A stretch of DNA of 64,000 nucleotides, taken from Ascoidea asiatica JCM 7603. Taxonomy: Eukaryota; Fungi; Ascomycota. Where the stretch lies: positions 1,435,205 to 1,499,204 of the forward strand of contig BCKQ01000004.1 of NCBI GenBank assembly GCA_001600695.1. The letters are read 5' to 3'. The notes beneath the pieces are model-generated. The model searched no databases and was not told the origin of the DNA. It saw only the letters and a list, made by a program, of their open reading frames with translations. The stretch's first letter is position 1. Every line of letters begins with the position of its first letter. Shown in pieces: positions 27,830 to 57,900 of this stretch. The position numbers and the translations under genes were made by a program.

Positions 27830-28412
27830 CTTTATTCTTATTTACATGATTATTAATATTATTTGAAGATAATACTGGATTATTTGTTGTTGGAGAAGCT
27901 ATAGTTGGAGTAGATATTGAATTATTAATAATTTTTTTTTTAACTGGGGATGGAGTAACCATATTAAAATCTTCATTAAATTCTTCAAAATCTTCATCAG
28001 TATTAATATTAGATATATTATCATTTATGTTATTACTTATTTTATCATTTGTATTATTATTTATATTATCATTTATAGTATTATTTATCTTTTTATTTAT
28101 TTTATTGTTATTTATCTTATTATTTATATCAGCGCTTGTATTAATATTTATATTTGTATTTGTATTTATATTTGTATTTGTATTTGATTTTGTATTTGTA
28201 TTCAAATGAGGATCATAATGAGGATCAATTGGAGATTGATTTATTATACTGTTAAAGTCATCATCATCATCATCGTCTTCATCATCAGAAGTAAGGTTAT
28301 TGATTGTTATATTATTGATATTTTTATTTGTAATTTTATTATTTGTATTATTATTAGTGAGATTTTTATTATTTGGATTAATAATTTGAAATTGAGAAGA
28401 AATTGTAGCCAT
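24414..28412 (-). CDS. BNI4: Bud-neck PP1 (Glc7)-targeting scaffold, Bni4-like; Asn/Ser-rich
   Basis: C-terminal SVKFSSRIILYETYNGDEYDR...LTPLLAQQIREELNAVKAEMPIHESSRCNT. This is an RVxF-like motif plus a phactr/Bni4-type tail. The rest is low complexity. Confidence 0.8.
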
Positions 28413-29878
28413 TTTGATCTAATTTTTATTTGATTTGATTTAATTTGATTTGATTTTGAGTATTAATGAATTGATATGATAAGATGAGATGAATAAAAGA
28501 TACAAAGAAAGAAAAAAAGAAAGAGTTATATAATTGAATATTGTAGATAATAAATACTAGCGGAGATTGATTATATAAATCGAATAAAAGGAAGATAATG
28601 AAATTATATTGACAATAAGAGAATATAAGACATAGATGGTAGGTATTAAAGGATAGATGAGTAAAAAGCAATGGCGATTGTGATGATTGTGTTGAAAATG
28701 AAGTATTTTGAGGATTTTGAGGAGGTTTGGAAAATAGCAGATGGATTTACAGCTCTGTTGTTATTTAGAAAAGTAACGAAAGAGAACGAAAGAGAAAAGA
28801 ATGAAACATAAAACACCGGTGGAAAATGTTCTGGTGACTGTTGGCTTTCTTATATAATTAGTATTCTATAATACTTTATGGTATATTTATTATATTGTGT
28901 TCTATTCTATTATATTATATTCTATTCTATTCTATTCTATTTTTTTATTGTGAAATATATTGAATAGTATATTTAGTAGTATATTGGATAATATATTTGA
29001 TAATGGAGCTGATATTCTTGGTTTGCTACTTGATTATATTTTGTTGTAATTCACAGCAGTACTTCAGTTGGATATTTAGTATGAGTCTGCTCTGTTTCAG
29101 CAGTTTTAGAATTCTTCACTGCTGTGTTTGTATTTTGATCTTTTCTTCCTTCTTCAGTTTTTCTCGTGAATTTTCCACTTTCCACTTTCGCTTCCACTTC
29201 CACCGTGCGTTTTCCAGAGCCAAACGGGAATCTGAACAGCACCCATCTCGAGCCGTGGCGGTGGAGTTCCCCATTCTGCCAGGTGGCACCCGGATGTGGC
29301 AGTGCAAGGTGTGGTTTAGCTCTGCGTGCCTGACGGAAGCCTCCCGGATCACCCACACACCTGCATCCGGTCCACGGCGCGACGCCCGCTGCCCAGATCT
29401 AGACTTCAAAACACGAGAACCTGATGCTTTCCACCAATCAAATGCCTTCTCTAAACTCCTTCCAGTTAGTTGACAGGACAACAAATTTCACCGGTAACCA
29501 CAGAAATGGGATTTTAGACTAATTTTAAACTACTTTTAAATTAATTTTAAACTAATTTCAAACTAACTTTGATCTGAGCTGCTAATGTTAAGTCAGGAGA
29601 AGCAGAAATGTACTGCCACCGGTATACACCTTCTACTAACTATGTGCACCGTACTATTTATATTTATTTATATTTATTTATATTTATTTATTTTTATTTA
29701 TATTTATTGATGTTTATTGATGTTTATTTATTCATATTTATATTTAGTTTTCCACTTTTCTGCCTCACTTTCCTTAACTGGCACGTGAGTGAGTCTGAAG
29801 TAAATACAGGGTTCATACAGGGGTCTAGCATAGGGGGTCTGTCTGCGAGGTTTTCAAAGGAGGTCTACATGAACATAT

Positions 29879-30183
29879 CCCTTTAATCCCAATTTTTGTG
29901 CTTTTTGTCGTAAAGCAATTTAACAGCTAAACGAGGCACGTGAGTACCAAACACTGTAGGTATTTACAATTTGTCTACAAAAACTAAACGGGATCTTAGA
30001 AAGACCACGTGCTTTAAAGTAAACTACTTGAGTAAACAGTATTACTACATCCCTACTTAATGCGGGATTAATGTTATAACTTATTTTTAATAAATATTTC
30101 AATTTTTTCTACACAGGTTTACACGTGCTCGTAAAGCCCAAAATTGCTTTACGACAAAAAGCACAAAAATTGGGATTAAAGGG
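29879..30183. mobile_element. piggyBac-like MITE (305 bp)
   Basis: Perfect 43 bp TIRs CCCTTTAATCCCAATTTTTGTGCTTTTTGTCGTAAAGCAATTT at 29879-29921 and 30141-30183. ATAT flanks both ends (29875-29878, 30184-30187). The TIRs are homologous to the ends of the element at 42979-46801. Confidence 0.9.
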
Positions 30184-30283
30184 ATATACTCAACTTAAAA
30201 CATTAATCATTTCAATCATTTCTCATTTCTATTCATTCACTTATTATAAAACAATAAAACCAATCTAAATCTAATCTATTCAA

Positions 30284-31151
30284 TCAGTTATTCGAGAATA
30301 TTGAACTAACTATTATCTTTCGTTTACCTCTATTACTATTATTATTATTATTATTGTTATTACTACCATTAGTATCATTATTAGAATCATTAGTGCTATT
30401 ATAATTTATTTTCTTTCCATTTTTTTCTTTAATCATATTATTATGTGAAATTTTCCTTCTTTTATCAATTGAATCTTTATAATTCCTTATCATTAATTTA
30501 CTTTCTTTGCTTCTATTTATTGTATCTTCTTTATTAACCATATTACTTTTATTATCTTTGATTCTTTTTGAATTTAAATCATTCATTTCTCGTTGTCTCT
30601 TTATTCCAGAAATCCTTTCTTTCATATTATTATTTTCATTATTAAGAAATATAGATGATGTTATAACTTTACTTTTATTTTCACATTCATTCTTTATTCT
30701 TTTTTTTCTTCTATTATCAATAACATTATTATTTCTCACTTTATTATTTTCAACTTTCTTTAAAACTTTATCAATACAATTTTCTTTTTTTTCTAATCTA
30801 TTGAAATTGCTTATATCATTTACTTTATTATTTAAATTTCTTGAAATCTTTCTCATAATATTTGATTTATAATTACTTCCATTATTTCCATTACTTCCAT
30901 TATTATAATTATAATTATAATTAAAATACATATTTTTTGGTTGAATAATTTCAATAACTTTTAATTTTTCTTTTTCTTTGATCTCTTGAAATTTTTTCAA
31001 ATTTTCTTTAGCAATTATTCTTTTTTCATTTAATTTATTTGAATATTTTTTATAAAATTTAAAAAAAAAATCTATTTTCATTTTCTTTTTATCTAATTTA
31101 AATAATTTTATACTCTCTTGAAGTTTTAAACTAAATCTTTCATTATCATTA

Positions 31152-31207
<56 letters not shown>

Positions 31208-31516
31208 CGTTTTAGTTGTCATTAAATTTGGAAAATCTTTTTTTATTAAATTTAACCAAAGTTCATTAGAATCTTCTTTAAAAACTGAATGTTCAATTTC
31301 AATTTCTTCTAATTGTTTTGCACTCATTTTTATTAAAATTGGTTTCAAAATTAAAAAATTTGTAAAAAATCCAAAACTTTTAATTAATTTTATATTCTTA
31401 TTATCATTTAATTCATTTAAACATAATTTTGTTAATTTTGGTATCCCATTTTTTTTATAATCTAATCTATTTTTCATATCTCTCTTAATTTTATCTTCTA
31501 AAATTGTTTCATTCAT
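30284..31516 (-). CDS. ELA1: Elongin A-like protein
   Basis: BC-box-like IPKLTKLCLNEL, then ILKPILIKMSAKQLEEIE and ELWLNLIKKDFP. Low-complexity K/N-rich C-terminus. Confidence 0.7.
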
Positions 31517-31905
31517 TTTTCTTTTTCTTATTTATTTATTTATTATATATAACCTTTAATCATTTATTTAATCAGATATTTAGTTATTCAGTTATTCAGT
31601 TATTCAATATTTAGATATATCATTAAATTATTGCTTTACTTATTTGATTAATTAACTAAAAGTTTTGATTATTTAATTATTGTATCATTCCATTAGTATT
31701 TTAAATTATAATGTTAAAGTTACTTACTTGTATTTTCAATTATTGCCCTTTTTCCAAATCATTTACGCCAAAAGATGTATGGGTGCTTACTAAGGACATC
31801 CGTACCTCAAGAAACCTCTCGATGTAAACCCACTAGACTGGCTTTAAGCTTACCTAATTGAAAAAAAAAAAATATTAAAAAGAATTTCTTCAATGCAAAA
31901 AAGAA

Positions 31906-42619: not shown

Positions 42620-43133
42620 TTCAGCATATAAGTTGGTAATATTATTTCGTGTATTCTTTGAATATTTACTGTATTGAACATCAAATAAATATATAAAAAT
42701 AAATACAAAAAATTTAATACTGTTTTTTATTGAGTTAATCAACCATAGTTCCAATCGTAAATAGAGTGTTTTGACGATGAGAAACAGGTCACAAACAAAG
42801 TGTTTTCAAGTCGCGGGCAAGGTTGATTTTTTCAAATAAATCACAAAATATGTTGAGAGGTATACATGCTGTTAATATCTGGAGGTGTACTATCTGTCAT
42901 TGAATGATTTTTCTTCAATCACGTTTTGTTACATAATCAACATAACTTACCAATATCAAAATTTACTATTAGAAATATCCCTTTAATACAACCATTTGTG
43001 CTTTTTGTCGTACCTGTTTTATTGATTATTACCCTCCTCTAAATTAGACATTTTAAATTTGAATTTGACTAAAAATTATTTGATTTACTATACTATTGAA
43101 TTGAATTTTAATAGTAACATATACAGTAATATC

Positions 43134-43296
43134 TATTCATTATAATTAACTACTAACTTAGAATGTATATTATATAGATATGTTTCTTCGTTCCACTTTT
43201 TATTTCTTATATATTCATTATAATTAACTACTAACTTAGAATGTATATTATATAGATATGTTTCTTTGTTCCACTTTTTATTTCTTATATATTCAT
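43134..43296. repeat. Near-perfect 78 bp tandem duplication inside the piggyBac-like element
   Basis: Units start at 43134 and 43212 and differ by one base. Confidence 0.9.
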
Positions 43297-43651
43297 AATA
43301 ACACATATTCTTTTTCATCATTTTTAACCAATTTTATTATATTGATAAATATAATATTTGAAGACTAAATTTGATATTTGCAAATTTTCGTCAAATTACC
43401 CAAAAATATTAGCTGTGTCATACAAACGGCACCCACCCACACCTCCGACAGTTGCGATGTGTTGAAAAATTTGAGCGTATTAAGAATTGTTTAGTTTTAT
43501 ACAACAATGCGGCATTTGATTCCTGTCTAATAAATCTTTTTGTAATCACTACAAAAGTTCTGAGCATCATGCAACATTATTAGGAACTTTGTAATTAAGT
43601 TTCCAAGATGCGGGATCTTATTAACATTTAGTAAGAACTTTGGCAATCATG

Positions 43652-43850
43652 CAAAGATTATAGAAAAAGTAACAAGTTTCTGGGAAATTTTACATTTTTA
43701 CAAAAATGAAGAGAATTGTACAGGATTTCATAAGAGCTGTGTAATTATTACAAAGTTCTTAGAAAAAGTAACAGGTTTCTGAGCAGTTTTACACTTTTAC
43801 AAAAATGAGGAGCACCGTGCGGGATCTCATAAGAACTCTGATATGATTAC
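43652..43850. repeat. Diverged 99 bp tandem repeat inside the piggyBac-like element
   Basis: TAGAAAAAGTAACA...TTTTACAAAAATGA recurs at 43661 and 43760. Confidence 0.8.
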
Positions 43851-44279
43851 AGGCTTCTCCAACATTTTAATTTTCCACTTGGAACTTTGCTACGGTAGCA
43901 AATATCCAGCAGTATTAGCCGTGATGCTGCGTACAGCTCAAGTTTGTTCTGTCAGGTGCGAGGCGGACCAATAAGTTATACTCTTACTAGATCTACTAGG
44001 TGCTAAACACGTCACAGCAGGTTGTTGGTTATTATTACCAAAACACTTAGGTTTATATTTTAGCACCCAAATAATTATTACCTTTTGAACACCGTCCATA
44101 TTCAACCCTTTTTGTGTTAAAGAAGCACGTTCCAACCCGAGAGCAGAAAATCAAAAATATTTATTAAATTATTGCTATTAAAGTAATTACAAATTAAAAA
44201 GGGATAAGGTAGTACCATTAAAATCACGAAGTTCTGCGCGCCATTTAGGTCGTGGGAACTTTAGTGCATGAGCACAGTT

Positions 44280-46495
44280 CGGTATCAAGATATAGGTCAA
44301 GCCAGCAATGAGGGCCAAGGTGGGCAGAGCAGCTCGGACACTCAAAGCAAGAAAACAGGACCTTCAAATGCTGCTTAGCTAAGTAGCAGTAACTATAACG
44401 GGCTTTCTACGGGAATTGATCGCATAATGAGACGCCGGATTAAGCAGGCCTATCCGCGTCGCAGCACTAGCACCGGAGTTTTCCTGAATATGTTTTTTAG
44501 CCACAATATCAATATCACTGAACTCAACAAAACTTAGTAACTTCTTACTGCACTTTTTTTTTCAAAAGCACGTGACTGTTAATAAGAGCCACATCAACCA
44601 AAAATAAAAAAGACTACTAAAGCTATTTTTGTAAACCCTCAAATGGGATGTGTGACTTGCTCAGTATTGGTCGGCAATATCCACAAGATTCAAGTGCTGG
44701 TTGTACTGATCGATAACCCTCGGAATAGAAACTTACGTTTGATTACCACTTTTGAAAATTTCATTAATTGAAAAATTAATTTGCCCTAAACTTTTGGTGT
44801 TTGGACGGAATTGTTTTTCACAACATTTTCATTTAGGTCATGGGCCGTACTAATCCGGAACTCAATGTTTCTGCTCATTAATGCAAAACATGCAACACCT
44901 TCATCATATTGATATCCAAGTTCGTTTCATTGTAAATCATTCTTTTTAGTTTTTATATCGGACAAGGTTTTAGCATAGGACCACTTGGATCAGTTAGTAC
45001 CAGTACCCCGAATGTCAACTTTATTCTTTAACCATTGAAATAATTTAATCCAAGTAAAATGATTATCCTTATAAAAAAATGGTACCGGATTTTTAACCTC
45101 CGCCTTTAAGAAACTGCCATAAAGATTCTGGGTTTGTATTATTTCCACGGGCTTTCGGGCTGCATATTATTGCTTCATCCCGTCTGAACTAACTGCGGTG
45201 TTGCTTCAAGATTTTTCTGGTGAGCTTGCGGAGTCTGCAGATATAACCCTATATATTGTTACTCTGTTCAATTATGTGTTTATATCCTTTTCTTGTTACA
45301 CTGCTCAAACAATATACAATGTTTGTTATTACATTACCGAACTACCACAACGTTATCAGAATATCGTAACTAAAAAACTGTACTGAATACAATTTTTTTC
45401 GAGCACCCTATACAGCCGCAAAATAGGCCACATCTGACTTTGTGGCGCTAATGTTATCAAGCTTTTGGACACCAATTAAACGAGGTGGTTTGTGTTTTTA
45501 GCTGTACACGAGGGGGTGGGTATATCTGACTAGGCCATTGCAAACATTGTATACCTTAGATGGATTGGTTTATTCGTTGCAACCGTACTATCTTGGGATA
45601 TGCCTTTAAATTTAATTTTCACTTCATGAATGGACACGGATGATCCTAAAATAAATACTGGGTGACTTGTCCTAACAATATGTTTTGCCAAAAAACTTAT
45701 ATTATCCCAAGGAAGCGTGACATCAACTACCATCTCTGTCAGATGTGACACGTGCAAAAAAGCTCAATATTATTAAAGCTGTAGTAGCTCATTGCTGATT
45801 TAATAAACGAATAATTTTACCAATTTCTTTATTAGAAATCTCTAATATTTGTAATGTTAATTGATCCAAATTAAATGAGAATTCCCAAAAGAATTGTAAT
45901 GAATACTAATTGGTCAATCCACCTTAGGTGTCATTACCAGCAGTTTGTAGGATTTTTGCCATTTATTTAAAAGAGTAATCCCTTAATTATTAACATTAAA
46001 GTCAATTGTAAGAATTAAGCAATTCGAAATGGATAGCTTGAGTAAATACTTTTACAATACAAAAAAGGATCTGGACAAACCCATTCTTTTCCCGAGGGTA
46101 CAGCTAATGCGGAGCCACTTTTGTGTGTTTTTTTTGTGACCTGTATAAGGCGTTTTCAAATATTTTTTGGTTGAAACCAGAAATGTGGATGCCATATCAC
46201 CAGCTATAACTGTCAAAAAATTTGAAGTGGTGACGTTCACCGTCTGGTGAAGAAGTACCATCAATGTGGATTCATTCTGTCACTTGTTCAACACTTTGAT
46301 ACCTGGAGGAGGTAAGCCCAATTTATCAAGCTGCATATCACCGGGAATCTCATAAAGATCTGTCTGGTCAAATATATTATTAAAAGCATGTGGTTCGGTG
46401 TCAAGGAACAGCTCGTCAAGATCATATTGGAACTGTTCCCTGCAATTTGGAGTAAGTGAATTAACTAGCTCATTAAGGTTTTCTGGAATATCCAT
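44280..46495 (-). pseudogene. piggyBac (PGBD/DDD) transposase pseudogene with multiple stops and frameshifts
   Basis: Ordered motifs on the minus strand: LGILI*FG..IRDF...SAMSYYSFNNI..LH (~45750-45890); SVSIHEVKIKFKG...NKPI (first-D block, ~45560-45640); YSDN (~45355); RISTAH (~44850); PRVIDQYNQHLNLVDIADQY (44664-44723); LVDVALINSHVL (~44570-44600); CFECPSCSAHLGPHCW Cys-rich tail (~44300-44350). Confidence 0.85.
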
Positions 46496-46954
46496 TGGAA
46501 AAGCTATTGATTTAATATTTAATATTTGATTATTGAACAGAAATTTTATTTTGGGTTATTACTGGCTTTTTATATTGAACTTCCGCCAAAATTGACGTAA
46601 AATGGGACTGTGCATCAAGCAATAACACGGTGCGCGCAATAAAAAACACCGCATAACCAAATAAGACACTTGATGCTTACCTCTCAAACCAGTTTGTTTA
46701 TTTAGCCGGGTTTTAAATACCTTCGCCATTTGAGACGCACGTGCATCGGTGAACCCCAAACCGGGTTTACGACCAAAAGCACAAAAGCTTGTATTAAGGG
46801 GATAGTTAATCAATCTTATTCAAATATTTATAAACAAACGAAAACAAAACAAGAGAAATATAGATGAAGTTTTATAAATTTTATTTTCTTTGAAATTAAC
46901 AAAACACATCAATATTATCTAACAAGCTAAATCTAACAAGAAAACAAAAGCACC

Positions 46955-49039: not shown

Positions 49040-49242
49040 GTTAATAAATTAAAAATATTGTAGATAAAGTGATCGATTGTAATATTGACAAAGAAAATTT
49101 TGGAAAAAAAGCAAAATTTGAAAGCAAAATTTGGAATCAAAATTTGGAAAATAGTGGAAAAACTAATTTCTATCAAGTATGGCCATTTCAAATAAATAGA
49201 TGGGTGGCCCGCCTAGGTTTTTATTTACTCATGAGTTGAAAA

Positions 49243-50278
49243 TGTTTGGAAATCATTGAGATCTATATATGATAGGGCATATATTGGTACTAACACCATA
49301 GGTGGTGAAGGTCTAAAAGACACGTATCTATATTAAACGTAAAAGAATTATGTATTATACAATAATGTCTGTACACTATGTATAATCATGCATAGAGGTG
49401 CATAAGTAAGCATAAATACACATAATGTTGCATAAAGTTGCATTAAGTTGCATGAAGAATACATCAATTTACATGACCTTGCATGAGTCTGTGTACAGGT
49501 ACACAGATAGTCGGATATCATGTGATATTCTAGTCACATGTCATAGATCATGTGTGCTTACCTCCGGTATAGCGTACAAAGTAGAAAAGACCTTGAGATT
49601 GGTACCAGCCATAGTCATATAACCTATAAGAGCATATTAAAGCTAAGCCACTCGGTACGAGGAGAATTAAAGAGGAGTTAGGATTTAGCGTCTATCCGGA
49701 TAGAAGTTAAATCCGCAAGGCCAATCGGATCTTGGCAGGGACGCCTTCTGGATGGCTGGATTGGCTAAGCTTAGTTTCATGTGAGATAAGGTATAATTCT
49801 CACTGCGTATACCGAATTCTCTCGCAGTAAACAGCAGACTAGTGGAGATAGTCGCGTAAGGGATCTATTCCGAGTACGGCTTCGCGATTAAAGATTATTC
49901 CCGGAAATTAGTGGGATTGTCTACCTCACTGGAAGGTGGGCTGATTGGTTTTACTATGGTAAAATTGAAATGTGAATTTCAATTGATTTCTAGTCAAGTT
50001 TGCAACCCTTTTTACAAGGTAAACTTGATTCCCACCCTGATTCTACGAAGAAATCCTGGGACTTTTGGGAATTCCCGAGAATTCTCGATAGTTCTGGGGG
50101 CCCCGTAGCAATCCTGAACTAATATAAAAGGAATCTATTTCGTCTAATTTTTTTTATATAATTTATTTAGTTTTCTTTTTAGATCATCGATTAGCACGAG
50201 TTAATTGATTAATACATAGTTTGTAAGTACGTAAAATTTATATATTCGATTTTGTAAGATGAATGAAAATTCACAACA
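49243..50278 (+). mobile_element. Probable solo LTR (~1036 bp)
   Basis: Begins TGTT and ends AACA. GAAAA flanks both sides (49238-49242, 50279-50283). The interior is GC-richer, with TATAAAAG at 50123 followed by an AT-rich R/U5-like tail. Confidence 0.55.
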
Positions 50279-51744
50279 GAAAACGACTCTAAAAGTTATT
50301 TGAAAAGGAAAAATATATTTGATACTGAAGGTAAAAATCATCATTGTAGATTACATAAGTAGGAATGCAATGTTTTTTACTGTAAGAGGCGGGTCGTCTT
50401 TCACTGTTACAAAACAGTTTTAGGCTGTTTAGTGCAGAACGCGAAATCATATTAGGACTCCTAAAAAAATTATTTGAGGATCATACGGGTTTGAGAAATA
50501 CGTCGGCCATTGGGAACTGGCAAGGTTAGAATTAGTGTTTTCCTTAATAGACGCAGCTCCGTGTTCGCAGTCGGAATTGAAATATTTGGTCACCGGTATC
50601 AATCGAAGGCGACCATAGTGCCGGCTACGACCAGCGTATTACCAGCTTCATGGTTCAGTATATACCGTGAAATGATTGATATTTTACTAGCAATTGGCCA
50701 ATAAGAGGGTTTGTGGTCAACCGCTACAATCGCTAGAATGTCCTGTAATGAAAAGTAGAAGAGACTAGGGTCTCGGTGGGATCTCCTACTTGGTGTTAGC
50801 TTCGGCAGTTAATAAATAAATTATTGTTTTGGGGCTCGGTGCAAGATTCTAAGGCAGCTTAGGCTCTCTTTGGTTGTTTGCAGATAAAAAATTAAGTACG
50901 CATCTGGCACATAGATCACGTGATATTTTTGGGAGGTTCCCTGTGAACTATGTCTAGTGATCAATCAATATTTCGATCAATTATATCAATAAAAATTCGA
51001 ATTATCAGAAGTTCTTCTTAAAAGTAATAGTTAAGTTTTTTTTGTGTTTCAAGAAAATCTCAACTAAAAAGACAAAAGTCGACCATGACTAACGTTCGAA
51101 ACGGTATTCAGGGGGGCGGATGCAAAAGTATATATTATAAAGATTGTATAACTTTCATTAACTATACACAAAAACACCAAACAATTGGCAATCATTGTTC
51201 AATATAATTTGACAATTTAAAAGGGAGTAGCTAAAATAAGTATTCATGTGGTTTTGTGCGTGTACACAACCATTATTTGTGTATTCAGTTCCTGTTCATC
51301 ATGGTTGAATAGTCAAGAAAGACCAACAGAACCACCGCTCAAAACATTTCAAGGCAATTAAAAAACTTAAAGACGAAATAATAGGGAGTTAAACTATTAC
51401 AGCAGAGAAACGGAATGAATGTTCCACGTCAGCAACAAAATAAGTATGCAACTTGTTCAAATAATGATATTGTATCAATATCCAAATTAAAAATTATTAT
51501 CGAAATCGCTGTAATCGCTAGCCATAGCAAAATATAACGCCAGCATTAATTAGGATATTGTTCGCAAATAGTTATATACATAGCTGGCACAAGCTGGTTA
51601 TTTATAAATATTTCCTGTTACGATGCATCATGGTGGCAACGCATACAATATTCCACTTTTGTAAAAATCAAACTGCATTCTACCAAAACACTTCGAAGAT
51701 TGGCTTTACATAAATATAGCTGCGTGTTAAATTTTTTAGTTTAA

Positions 51745-54678: not shown

Positions 54679-54976
54679 TGTGGAAACATGTGCCATCAAA
54701 TACATAGTGGTTTTATCCTGATGTATCCAGAATTTTTGGACACGACTCACCCAGTGAATGGTGTTCAAGGCTGGTATAATAGTTGAGGACCCTAATTCCC
54801 TGCTGTCGGGTAAAATCTAGAGTTTGGATACCCATAATTCATGCCGACCTTCCCGGATCACTAAAGTTCCACTTTGTAATTTTGTCCTCGTAGTCTTCGT
54901 ATTATGTAATCAATTATACAATAAATTCAGTACAACTGTTTTACAAGATTAACATTCTCAAGCTGAAAAATTTTCA
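54679..54976 (+). repeat. 5' LTR of the Ty1/copia element (3' boundary approximate)
   Basis: Starts TGTGGAAAC and aligns with 60689-60987 at roughly three-quarters identity by eye. Confidence 0.8.
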
Positions 54977-57900
54977 ATCTGAAAATTTTCAAATTTGAAA
55001 ACACAGTGCTCAATTCAATTTGATCATATAAATTTGATAATGTAATAGAATCAAAAATAAAATATCATATAATATTTAATATATTTAAACTAATAAAAAG
55101 ATTTTTTTTAAGTATCAACAAAACTTTTTAAATATATTTTAAACAATGGCTTGCGAACAATGGATGGAAACTAGTCAAATGATAATGAAAATGAAATTGA
55201 GAGTACATTATTCAACCCTACTGCTGCAAGTAATACTGAATCAATCCAACAAAAATAATGAGCCGGCAGAAATTCCAAATAATGCTTCAGAAAATATTTA
55301 TAATACAGGTCCAGAGTTATTAGAATCAATTTTATCTCATAAAATATATATAACTCCAACTTTAGATTATTTTAGAGATCCTCAAAAACTTAAAGATCCT
55401 TCTGGATATTTTACATGTTTCAAAGATTTAAGTAGTGCAATTAGAATGAACTTTAGGTCTGTTTCTCAAGTTGCTGTTAATTGTTTAGAAGCAGATGAAG
55501 ATTCAACTTTTAAAAATAAATGCATTTCAAACTGAATAAAATTGTGTTTATTATTCGGATGTACTTTTAAACATATCATTTCAGCTCAAATTGAATCTTT
55601 AAACTACGATTAAAAGCTATTAGACATTATTGCATTCGACAATTAACGCGAGGTAATTTAGGTTATTATTATCTTCAAAATAAATTTTCTAAATCAAACA
55701 ATTATCAAGAATTTTTTGATCATACTTTACATACTGCTTATTGTTTATATATGATTCAGAAAAAAATATTACTTTCAACTTAACTAAAGCACAAGAAAAT
55801 CAAAATGATCAATTTTTTCACACAATTATTACTCTCAAATTTCTTCAAGCTAGATATAGATAATGGAAAACAACTTATAATATTTTTTTCACAATTTCAA
55901 TCGTCAATAATGAATATGTATTTTTAAATGTCATCAGAAGAATCTTTTATATTTTAAAACAAAAAGTTGTTGATTATCAATAACATTCATATAAATTAAA
56001 TTCTTTTAGAAAACCGAAAACAATGATAATAACAATAAGTTTGGTCAATGAGATCATAGCAGATTCAATCAAAATCTAAGGGTAAATAGAAATCAATATC
56101 AATATAATGATAGCAGGAAAAGAAGTAATTCAAATTCTAATGATAATGATGATAATAGTTATAATAAAAGAGGTGGTTATAGAGGAAAACATTCATCTTG
56201 AAGAGGAGGAGGAGATAGTTTCGATAGACAGTTTCAAAATATATCATCACCAAGAAACAATGATAATAATAATAATAAATTTCAAAGTACTCGAAACGAA
56301 ACTTCTTCATCAAATTCAAATGAAAATTTAGGTCAACCTACAAGATCTTATGATTCTTTTGATCATCGTGCTGATCGAGAGTAACGATCTTGCTCCAGCT
56401 CGAATTGATATTTTGTTTCAAATTCTACAACTTCTACAACTTTACATAATAAGTTAAAAAATAACTCACCTATTACACATTTGTTTAATTTTTCTCCAAC
56501 CTTTTTATCTAATAATAATTCGGATAATAATACTAATACTCCATTGTTAGATCCTAGTAGTAAATATTATAAAAATGAATTTGTAGTTGATTCTGGAGCC
56601 TATATACGTACAATTTAAGGTACTGATTTATTAAGATCATGTAGAATTCAAGAAATTGATACAGATCCATTTAAAGTCATAATGGCAAATAAAACTACAT
56701 TGGAATTTTCAACTTTTTTATCAATCAAATGTTTTTTCAATCTTATTCCTTTACAAATTAAATTTATTTATCATCCTTCCTTTTAGAACTTATTAAGTAT
56801 CAAAGACTTAAATTATCACAATTTCAATACTACGTTTAGCAAAGATAATCAATTAATCCTAACTCATGAAAATGCTGATTTTAAATTTGATTCAAATTTT
56901 ATAACTCTGTTGTTTCCAAAATCTTTTAAATATACTACTTTTTCTCAAAATAATTTATTTATCAATTCCATTGAACCAAATTTACAAGTAAATAAGTCTA
57001 ATATTACTAATCATTATATCCTAACATTTAATGTTGTTAAAAATAAATCAAAAAATGAAATTTCAACTTATTTGCACCAATATTTTGGCGACATTTCAGC
57101 TAGAAAGCCTCAAATTTTACACCGTTAGAATTGAATTTCTAAATAGATACCAAATATAAATGTTAATAATGCAAACTGTAGAACATGCAATATAGATTCA
57201 AGTAGGCTACTATTTAAAAAGAATAAAAATTTAAGATGCCCAATAAATAACAATGTAAGATCCATTGGATCCGATGGACTCGAAGGTCAACATAAATATT
57301 GATCAAATGATAAATATGCATTAAGTATCAGTGAATTAATAAGTAGATATACTTTAATTAATTTCAATCCGGATAAAAATAAATTTCTGCCAACAATTTT
57401 ATGTTTTTTAAATCTAATTGATAGAGGTAATCCAAGTCAAAGACTCATTGTAATCACAAGTGATAGAGAACCAGAACTTTTGAATAATCAAATGATTTCA
57501 ACTATCAAAGATCCTGGTTATTTATTAAGCATTAGTCGTGGATATGAAAGTGGCACAAAGGCAGAAATTGACTCAAAAATCAATCAAATTGTTGGTGTTA
57601 CTTGAATTCTCAATAAATGCATACTCAGAAGTATTTTGGGATTTTCCCATAAATACTGGTGTATATATGATTAATCATTTACCAAAGGTAGACTATATAC
57701 CAAAGAAACTGAAAATTAATAATAATAATAATTCCACAAAAAGTTTGAATTCCACTAATGGATTTATTCAATAATATTAATTCATTACATGCATTACCAG
57801 CTCAGTTTATAGAACTTATTCATATAAATAGAGTTGACAATCGAGATAAACTTAATAAAAGAACTCCTGCAATATTTTTAGGTCCATTTTTATTTATGGC

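Follow-up and report, generated by a model that had tools for sequence, protein, structure and literature searches.

The 305-bp element at positions 29879-30183 (forward strand) of the sequence analysed here, MITE-305, is a non-autonomous element of the piggyBac type. We consider it, with a probability of about 0.78, to represent a low-copy family of piggyBac-derived MITEs that was mobilised in trans, repeatedly and in evolutionarily recent times, and that is now most likely an orphan, because every transposase copy found in the assembly is dead. The window, i.e., the whole stretch of DNA that was analysed, is 64,000 nt long and comes from the budding yeast Ascoidea asiatica JCM 7603 (BCKQ01000004.1:1,435,205-1,499,204, assembly GCA_001600695.1). 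Its G+C content is 28%, and it lies on contig C4 of its own assembly, which comprises 20.3 Mb in 71 contigs.

The two terminal inverted repeats (TIRs) of the element are located at 29879-29921 on the forward strand (first bases CCCTTTAAT) and at 30141-30183 on the reverse strand (last bases ATTAAAGGG). The arms are 100% complementary over 43 nt (43/43), the element starts with CCCTTTAATCCC, and its termini have the form CCC...GGG. Within the 64-kb window the TIR word occurs twice, compared with 0 occurrences expected from shuffled sequences. No open reading frame (ORF) of at least 80 aa is found inside the element, and one 92-aa frame overlaps merely its first 8 nt. Since MITE-305 encodes nothing, its mobilisation would have taken place in trans. 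The element is thus what is generally called a MITE: it is smaller than approximately 800 bp, non-coding and bounded by TIRs, and its copies are dispersed in unrelated flanks. Its left approximately 110 nt are similar to the end that lies upstream of the transposase in autonomous copies, and its right approximately 120 nt to their downstream end.

On the right side, 100 bp separate the end of MITE-305 from the stop codon of an ORF on the reverse strand (30284-31516) with an Elongin-A domain (PF06881, 37 bits with a cut-off of 29.8). As the domain scores above the cut-off, the label ELA1-like is reasonable. An earlier note, based on the letters of the window, had described a 305-bp element with 43/43 TIRs at this distance from the stop of the ORF, and all of this was reproduced. 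On the left side, a GC-rich island (29190-29490) lies 400 bp from MITE-305 in the common intergenic region; it is single-copy in the genome and reaches 64% G+C at 29200-29399 against the 28% background. A structured RNA in the island was considered and rejected, as there was no Rfam match and the fold was unusual on neither strand (z +0.8 and +1.7). Between the island and MITE-305, five tandem repeats of an 11-bp unit (TTTTAAACTAA-like) occupy positions 29512-29566.

The element carries three CACGTG palindromes in 305 bp, where 0.04 would be expected (P about 9e-6). Two of them are subterminal, at 29937-29942 (59 nt from the left tip) and at 30122-30127 (57 nt from the right tip), and the third is internal (30006-30011). 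The position of the left subterminal palindrome is kept in a 202-bp MITE and in the 5'-type end of a large element described below, and at the right subterminal site the relic copies carry the mutated forms CACCTG, CAGGTG and CACTTG. The subterminal palindromes, 57-59 nt from the tips, have been kept in lineages whose remaining sequence has diverged by about 25-30%, and are mutated in dead copies. This suggests that CACGTG may take part in end recognition, bound by either the Cys-rich domain of the transposase or a host bHLH factor. The same palindromes, together with a strong predicted single-stranded DNA hairpin of the element (-69.5 kcal/mol, z -13.9), could also be read as a regulatory cassette, a hairpin/E-box module adopted by the host between the ELA1-like gene and the downstream genes. 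Such a role is very improbable: the copies reside in unrelated intergenic contexts, the strength of the hairpin is a trivial consequence of the TIRs, and the palindromes belong to the transposon since their subterminal positions are fixed in all lineages, including the transposase-bearing ones. A fourth CACGTG is found at 29782-29787, 92 bp outside MITE-305, in the context GGCACGTGAGT, of which 11 nt are identical to the left subterminal site of the element; this may be due to chance or may be what is left of an earlier element.

A DNA search of the whole assembly revealed six full-length MITE-305 loci, which are 86-100% identical, and two fragments, on contigs C15 and C10. In addition to the window copy on C4 (100%), the full-length copies are C5:795898 (99%), C5:576977 (98%), C46:7064 (97%, with a second copy of the locus at the end of C28), C2:1966997 (94%) and the decayed C1:1971086 (86%). 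A search with the TIR pattern returned 30 termini genome-wide, compared with one for the reversed control. The genome-wide TIR count proposed in the earlier note has thus given a multicopy family, with six full-length loci and, sister families included, about 30 termini, and not the single-copy element that the note had named as evidence to the contrary. The sequences outside the copies are mutually unrelated and single-copy in the assembly, and the copies have therefore been made by transposition rather than by segmental duplication. All of them are located outside long open frames.

Several smaller relatives extend this picture. The sister family of 202 bp is represented by two loci, each of which is present twice (an inverted duplication on C13, and C41/C32). 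On C13 the two copies of the 202-bp MITE (C13:91748-91956 and C13:111400-111608) lie in two identical, inverted copies of one segment, 20 kb apart, and in the flanks of the duplicates the identity is 100% across 400 bp on one side and 99.6% across 225 bp on the other. The TIR pattern search also detected a third small element at C5:431722-431930. The same TIR core with TAT flanks is found at C20:24021-24181 and C9:454308, which are either small elements or single termini. As for the MITE-305 fragment on C15, its flanks (L008, C15:330603-333757) are 73-86% identical to positions 49064-50378 and 54856-55315 of the window; similarity to two stretches about 4.5 kb apart points to what is probably a paralogous gene region.

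The window copy is flanked by ATAT on both sides (29875-29878 and 30184-30187), and only TAT on the left (29876-29878) and ATA on the right (30184-30186) are constant in the family. With all copies set in one orientation, the left and right flanks are ATAT and ATAT in the window copy, GTAT and ATAG in C5:795898, C5:576977 and C46, CTAT and ATAC in C2, and ATAT and GTAG in the decayed C1 copy. The 202-bp family has ATGT and ATAA on C13, and TTAT and ATAA on C32/C41. The large element at 42979-46801 has ATAT and ATAG, and the third small element at C5:431722 has TTAT and ATAC. When termini were searched without any constraint on the flanks, TAT was present at 19 of 24, the exceptions being decayed copies, and at the five youngest MITE-305 loci it flanks all termini (10/10). 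The constant junction is xTAT-CCC...GGG-ATAy, with hyphens marking the element borders, and the fourth bases x/y are A/T, G/G (three times), C/C, A/G and T/A. G or C occupies the fourth position in 11 of 21 cases, compared with the 28% background. A preference for GTATAG targets was considered, as x equals y in 4/4 insertions with G or C on both sides, but with p about 0.06 it was not established.

This pattern has consequences for the target site duplication. TTAA, the site by which piggyBac insertions are commonly recognised, is found on both sides in none of the approximately 13 independent insertions. The earlier note had taken ATAT as the duplicated target; the motif is indeed present on both sides of the window copy, but a 4-bp ATAT duplication fits that copy only, since in most copies x/y is not A/T and the flanks follow the xTAT/ATAy rule. 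Mutation cannot rescue the ATAT duplication, because copies that are 97-99% identical to the window copy already lack it. Variable x and y around constant TAT and ATA thus reject both TTAA and a 4-bp ATAT duplication and imply, from filled sites, a target duplication of 2 bp. In the register that we favour the target would be TATA with AT duplicated (29877-29878), and the element would be CCC...GGG; in the other, less probable but still plausible, TA would be duplicated (29876-29877) and the terminal T...A would be part of the element. The former is favoured because piggyBac elements end in CCC/GGG and a terminal G is needed for excision (cited in PMC5381638). The two registers predict that 307 bp (TATA target, AT duplicated) or 309 bp (TA duplicated) would be removed relative to the empty site, which for the window copy would read ATATAT or ATAT, respectively. 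A single ATAT at an empty site cannot separate the models, since it is predicted both by the TA reading and by the model of the earlier note.

The flanks can also be read as the TA duplication of a Stowaway-like MITE with T...A as terminal bases, moved by a transposase of the Tc1/mariner type, and the resemblance of the ends to piggyBac would then be secondary. This is hardly credible, as the transposase-bearing relatives with matching TIR and subterminal sequences carry PF13843 and no Tc1/mariner domain, and the ends are CCC...GGG as in piggyBac. MITE-305 therefore belongs with piggyBac by its transposase family and its termini, and departs from it in the lack of TTAA.

The large element of the window (42979-46801, reverse strand) is a decayed 3.8-kb piggyBac-type element of an 'ACA-type' TIR lineage, with the borders ATAT-CCC...GGGG-ATAG. 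Its transposase remnant contains many stops and frame changes. The termini of the MITEs and of the large element all start with CCCTTTAAT or CCCCTTAAT and thus have the CCC...GGG form of piggyBac. At the level of the whole TIR, however, MITE-305 matches the large element at 31-33 of 43 positions versus 41 of 43 for a decayed relic on C29/C32, and its right 122 nt are 84% identical (103/122) to the 3' end of the C29 relic. The left end of MITE-305 matches the right end of the large element at 75 of 110 positions. Alignment of all ends resolved two end types with one subterminal block each. Block 1 is common to the left ends of MITE-305 and the 202-bp MITE and to the transposase-upstream end of the large element, and block 2 is common to the right ends of the two MITEs and to the 3' end of C29. 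MITE-305 has thus kept the two termini of an element of the C29 type. The large element and the 202-bp MITE form a sister lineage, in which TIR positions 10-15 are ACAAGC or ACAACC and not CCCAAT.

The large element is accordingly a relative and not the parent of MITE-305, and it pairs instead with the 202-bp family. The true parent of MITE-305 is absent from the assembly, as even the closest relic reaches no more than 84% identity and has no 5' end. The homology to the large element reported in the earlier note holds in so far as the quoted string is found at 46738-46773, but the end pairs given above match better, and the quoted pair sets the 3'-type end of the MITE against the 5'-type end of the large element. 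As a partner of MITE-305 the large element is outmatched by the C29/C32 relic in the TIR comparison given above.

Two repeats were observed within the large element. A segment of approximately 190 bp (45895-46084) occurs in at least 25 copies of 73-84% identity on many contigs and represents a distinct family of short repeats that has inserted into the dead transposon. The approximately 1.1 kb directly behind the left TIR (43018-44106, positions 40-1128 of the element) is found at about ten other loci with 70-96% identity (C39, C16 twice, C4:1508167, C14, C17, C34, C9 and C3). One locus of this segment, L036, carries a degenerate piggyBac-type TIR, and the segment may for this reason be a further non-autonomous derivative family.

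A transposase that could move MITE-305 was sought in three ways. The PF13843 profile had three matches in the whole assembly, on C29 (59 bits), C15 and C32, all broken by stops. P0001, a 605-aa full-length homologue that itself scores 287 bits on PF13843, gave four fragmentary matches in the assembly, with open frames of up to 183 aa. When the DNA of the C29 element and of the large element served as query, seven relic loci emerged, namely C29, C32, C4, C13:389744-391303, C8:21083, C18:146585-147407 and C15:182850. Every relic that was read has several in-frame stops and frame changes, and apart from C32, a duplicate of C29, the relic proteins are 40-66% identical to C29. The C29 relic, which like C32 has no 5' end, still displays a Cys-rich C-terminus and the catalytic blocks VSIDE, LLMDNY and KGGLDISDQ, although stops and frameshifts interrupt it. 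Just upstream of it (L030 186-779, C29:72741-73334) an open frame resembles, by eye, the C-terminal portion of an integrase from a retrotransposon; if this reading holds, transposon debris may be clustered here.

Thus, none of the searches with the profile, the protein or the DNA found an intact piggyBac transposase in the 20.3-Mb assembly. This absence is well supported, because an intact gene would score far above the relics, and it applies to the assembly and not to the species; an intact copy may lie in sequence that the 71 contigs do not include, or in other isolates. The intact transposase with the same TIRs that the earlier note had expected elsewhere, and with it the active autonomous/non-autonomous pair, did not emerge from the assembly.

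How recently the family moved can be judged from the copies. Two of 305 positions separate the window copy from C5:795898, three (one in a TIR and two internal) separate C5:576977 from C46, and between the two pairs there are 6-8 internal differences (2.7-3.7%). The TIRs are intact at five MITE-305 loci. Between the C2 copy and the young copies, the TIRs have 0 differences in 86 positions versus 18 in 223 internal positions (P=7e-4). It follows that the sub-lineages diverged with their ends still selected for mobility, over several rounds of mobilisation. Judged by these distances, the last mobilisation was recent on an evolutionary scale, no more than about 1% of divergence ago; movement that is still going on is not demonstrable from them. 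The earlier note had described a recently mobilised piggyBac-type MITE, and this is borne out in the evolutionary sense by a multicopy family with nearly identical youngest copies. Its further step from perfect TIRs to a live transposase does not follow: at a divergence of 1% or less about 0.3-0.9 changes are expected in the 86 TIR nucleotides, so perfect TIRs add nothing on their own, being expected by chance in a 99%-identical copy, and the assembly holds only relics.

Short dispersed repeats recombine efficiently in budding yeasts, and ectopic gene conversion could make copies look younger than they are. Old copies might even have been kept alike, with perfect TIRs, by such conversion instead of recent transposition, and the arrangement of the copies in two near-identical pairs, as well as the unlike variant content of the samples described below, would agree with this. 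We regard it as quite improbable, since conversion leaves unexplained why the C2 copy has 0/86 differences in the TIRs yet is 8% diverged inside, and it creates no new insertions with constant TAT/ATA flanks.

Empty sites were looked for in the assembly and in reads. The 900-bp flanks of two other MITE-305 copies have no second place in the assembly, and an all-against-all comparison of the flanks of the retrieved loci gave no empty site. No entry from other assemblies turned up when the ELA1-like protein was looked for by exact match, and scanning metagenomes for the TIR pattern gave 0 matches. Contigs built from reads of the organism (four runs, two samples) were compared with positions 28400-31700 of the window (3,301 letters). 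The MITE region is present in both samples (three runs), in the form of short contigs interrupted at repeats. None of these contigs skips MITE-305 and none spans the whole element; one contig of X1 starts within the right TIR and continues into the flank. In X1 and X3 there is a zero-difference unitig for the window copy and no variant of the C5:795898 type, and in X2 there is no contig with the diagnostic bases of the window copy and no variant of the C2 type. The difference between the samples could reflect insertion polymorphism, gene conversion or an artefact of assembly polishing.

These data also bear on the idea that MITE-305 is half of a living two-component system, still moved by an intact, currently active piggyBac-type transposase elsewhere in the species. 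The youngest copies are only two or three bases apart, the TIRs are intact at five loci, two samples have different sets of MITE variants and the assembly is fragmented, all of which would suit such a system. It is nevertheless unlikely, given that all searches of the 20.3 Mb ended in seven relics with stops and frameshifts, that the end of the nearest relic is 16% diverged from MITE-305, and that an active MITE would be expected in far more copies. Were MITE-305 still mobile, an intact transposase that targets TATA and duplicates 2 bp would segregate in the species and be missing here, and the sample variants would be insertion polymorphisms; we give this little credence, but budding yeasts would then have their first native and active system of the piggyBac type, one with a non-canonical cutting geometry.

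The preferred reading, in which a stranded MITE family survives its transposase, can be put as follows. Internal deletion of a piggyBac-type DNA transposon would have given rise to MITE-305, with only the two ends retained. A transposase of the piggyBac family (PF13843, DDD) would recognise the TIRs of 43 nt, probably together with the subterminal blocks. Supplied in trans, it would excise MITE-305 and join it at TA-centred sites, presumably with a 2-bp stagger. At least two sub-lineages would have given two insertions each, with the TIRs preserved by selection. The autonomous partner would then have been lost and outlived by MITE-305 as an orphan. Given so few copies and the lack of a functional transposase in the assembly, the element is probably stranded and not active.

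On its own the locus is ordinary, an intergenic and probably immobile MITE copy. Endogenous cut-and-paste transposons are, however, scarce in budding yeasts, and a young MITE family shows that a transposase of the piggyBac type was at work in this lineage in the fairly recent past. In a survey of fungal cut-and-paste transposons, piggyBac was listed only for Mucoromycota, Microsporidia and Pezizomycotina and not for Saccharomycotina (PMC5751038). A budding-yeast piggyBac-type family is a modest extension of this known fungal range. About a dozen clean junctions without TTAA support a fungal branch with a TA-centred target and a 2-bp stagger, an idea that bears on how piggyBac enzymes choose and cut their targets and on their use in gene delivery.

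Odd flanks have been reported before. Rare piggyBac flanks such as ATAG, TTAT, ATAT and ATAA, unequal on the 5' and 3' sides, were put down to mutation, and a 50-bp TIR was reported in a Paracoccidioides element (Bouallegue et al., 2017; PMC5381638). These flanks fit the xTAT/ATAy rule, which suggests a regular feature of a fungal branch. Among the other contigs that were inspected, the element of P0088 (L067), a distant relative, has the canonical ends TTAA-CCCTTT...AAAGGG-TTAA, and the single end visible in the contig of P0006 (L071) is GGG-ATAA. A 17-nt, 82% inverted repeat with TTAA-CCG in the contig of P0127 (L066) was too weak to call, and the contigs of P0001, P0008, P0002 and P0004 were too short or had no recognisable element ends.

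The piggyBac-derived MITEs include human MER85 and MER75 and bat npiggyBac. Like these, MITE-305 is short and non-coding, derives by deletion from a transposon whose two ends it retains, has CCC...GGG termini and would depend on a PF13843 DDD transposase acting in trans. It differs in its flanks (xTAT/ATAy and not TTAA), in its TIRs (43 nt versus the usual 12-19), in its budding-yeast host and in its very low copy number. MITEs of coral and Blepharisma (PMC2872659 and PMC9942856) also belong to this group. With the canonical piggyBac of Trichoplusia ni the family shares the PF13843 domain of its relics, their IDE, MDNY and GGLDxxDQ blocks and Cys-rich C-terminus, and the CCC/GGG tips; unlike it, the MITE-305 family lacks TTAA, and its TA-centred flanks imply a 2-bp instead of a 4-bp stagger. 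Stowaway and other Tc1/mariner MITEs are likewise small elements with TIRs, AT-rich targets and flanks readable as a TA duplication, whereas the autonomous relatives of MITE-305 encode PF13843 and its termini are piggyBac-like. PiggyMac-mediated IES excision in Paramecium is the subject of PMC3408717 and PMC6143343. PiggyMac is a domesticated excisase of the piggyBac family that leaves 4-nt overhangs at sites with only the central TA conserved. Here, too, a piggyBac-family enzyme would have acted at sites conserved only at a central TA; unlike PiggyMac, it is a decayed selfish transposase, and its geometry is deduced from the flanks alone.
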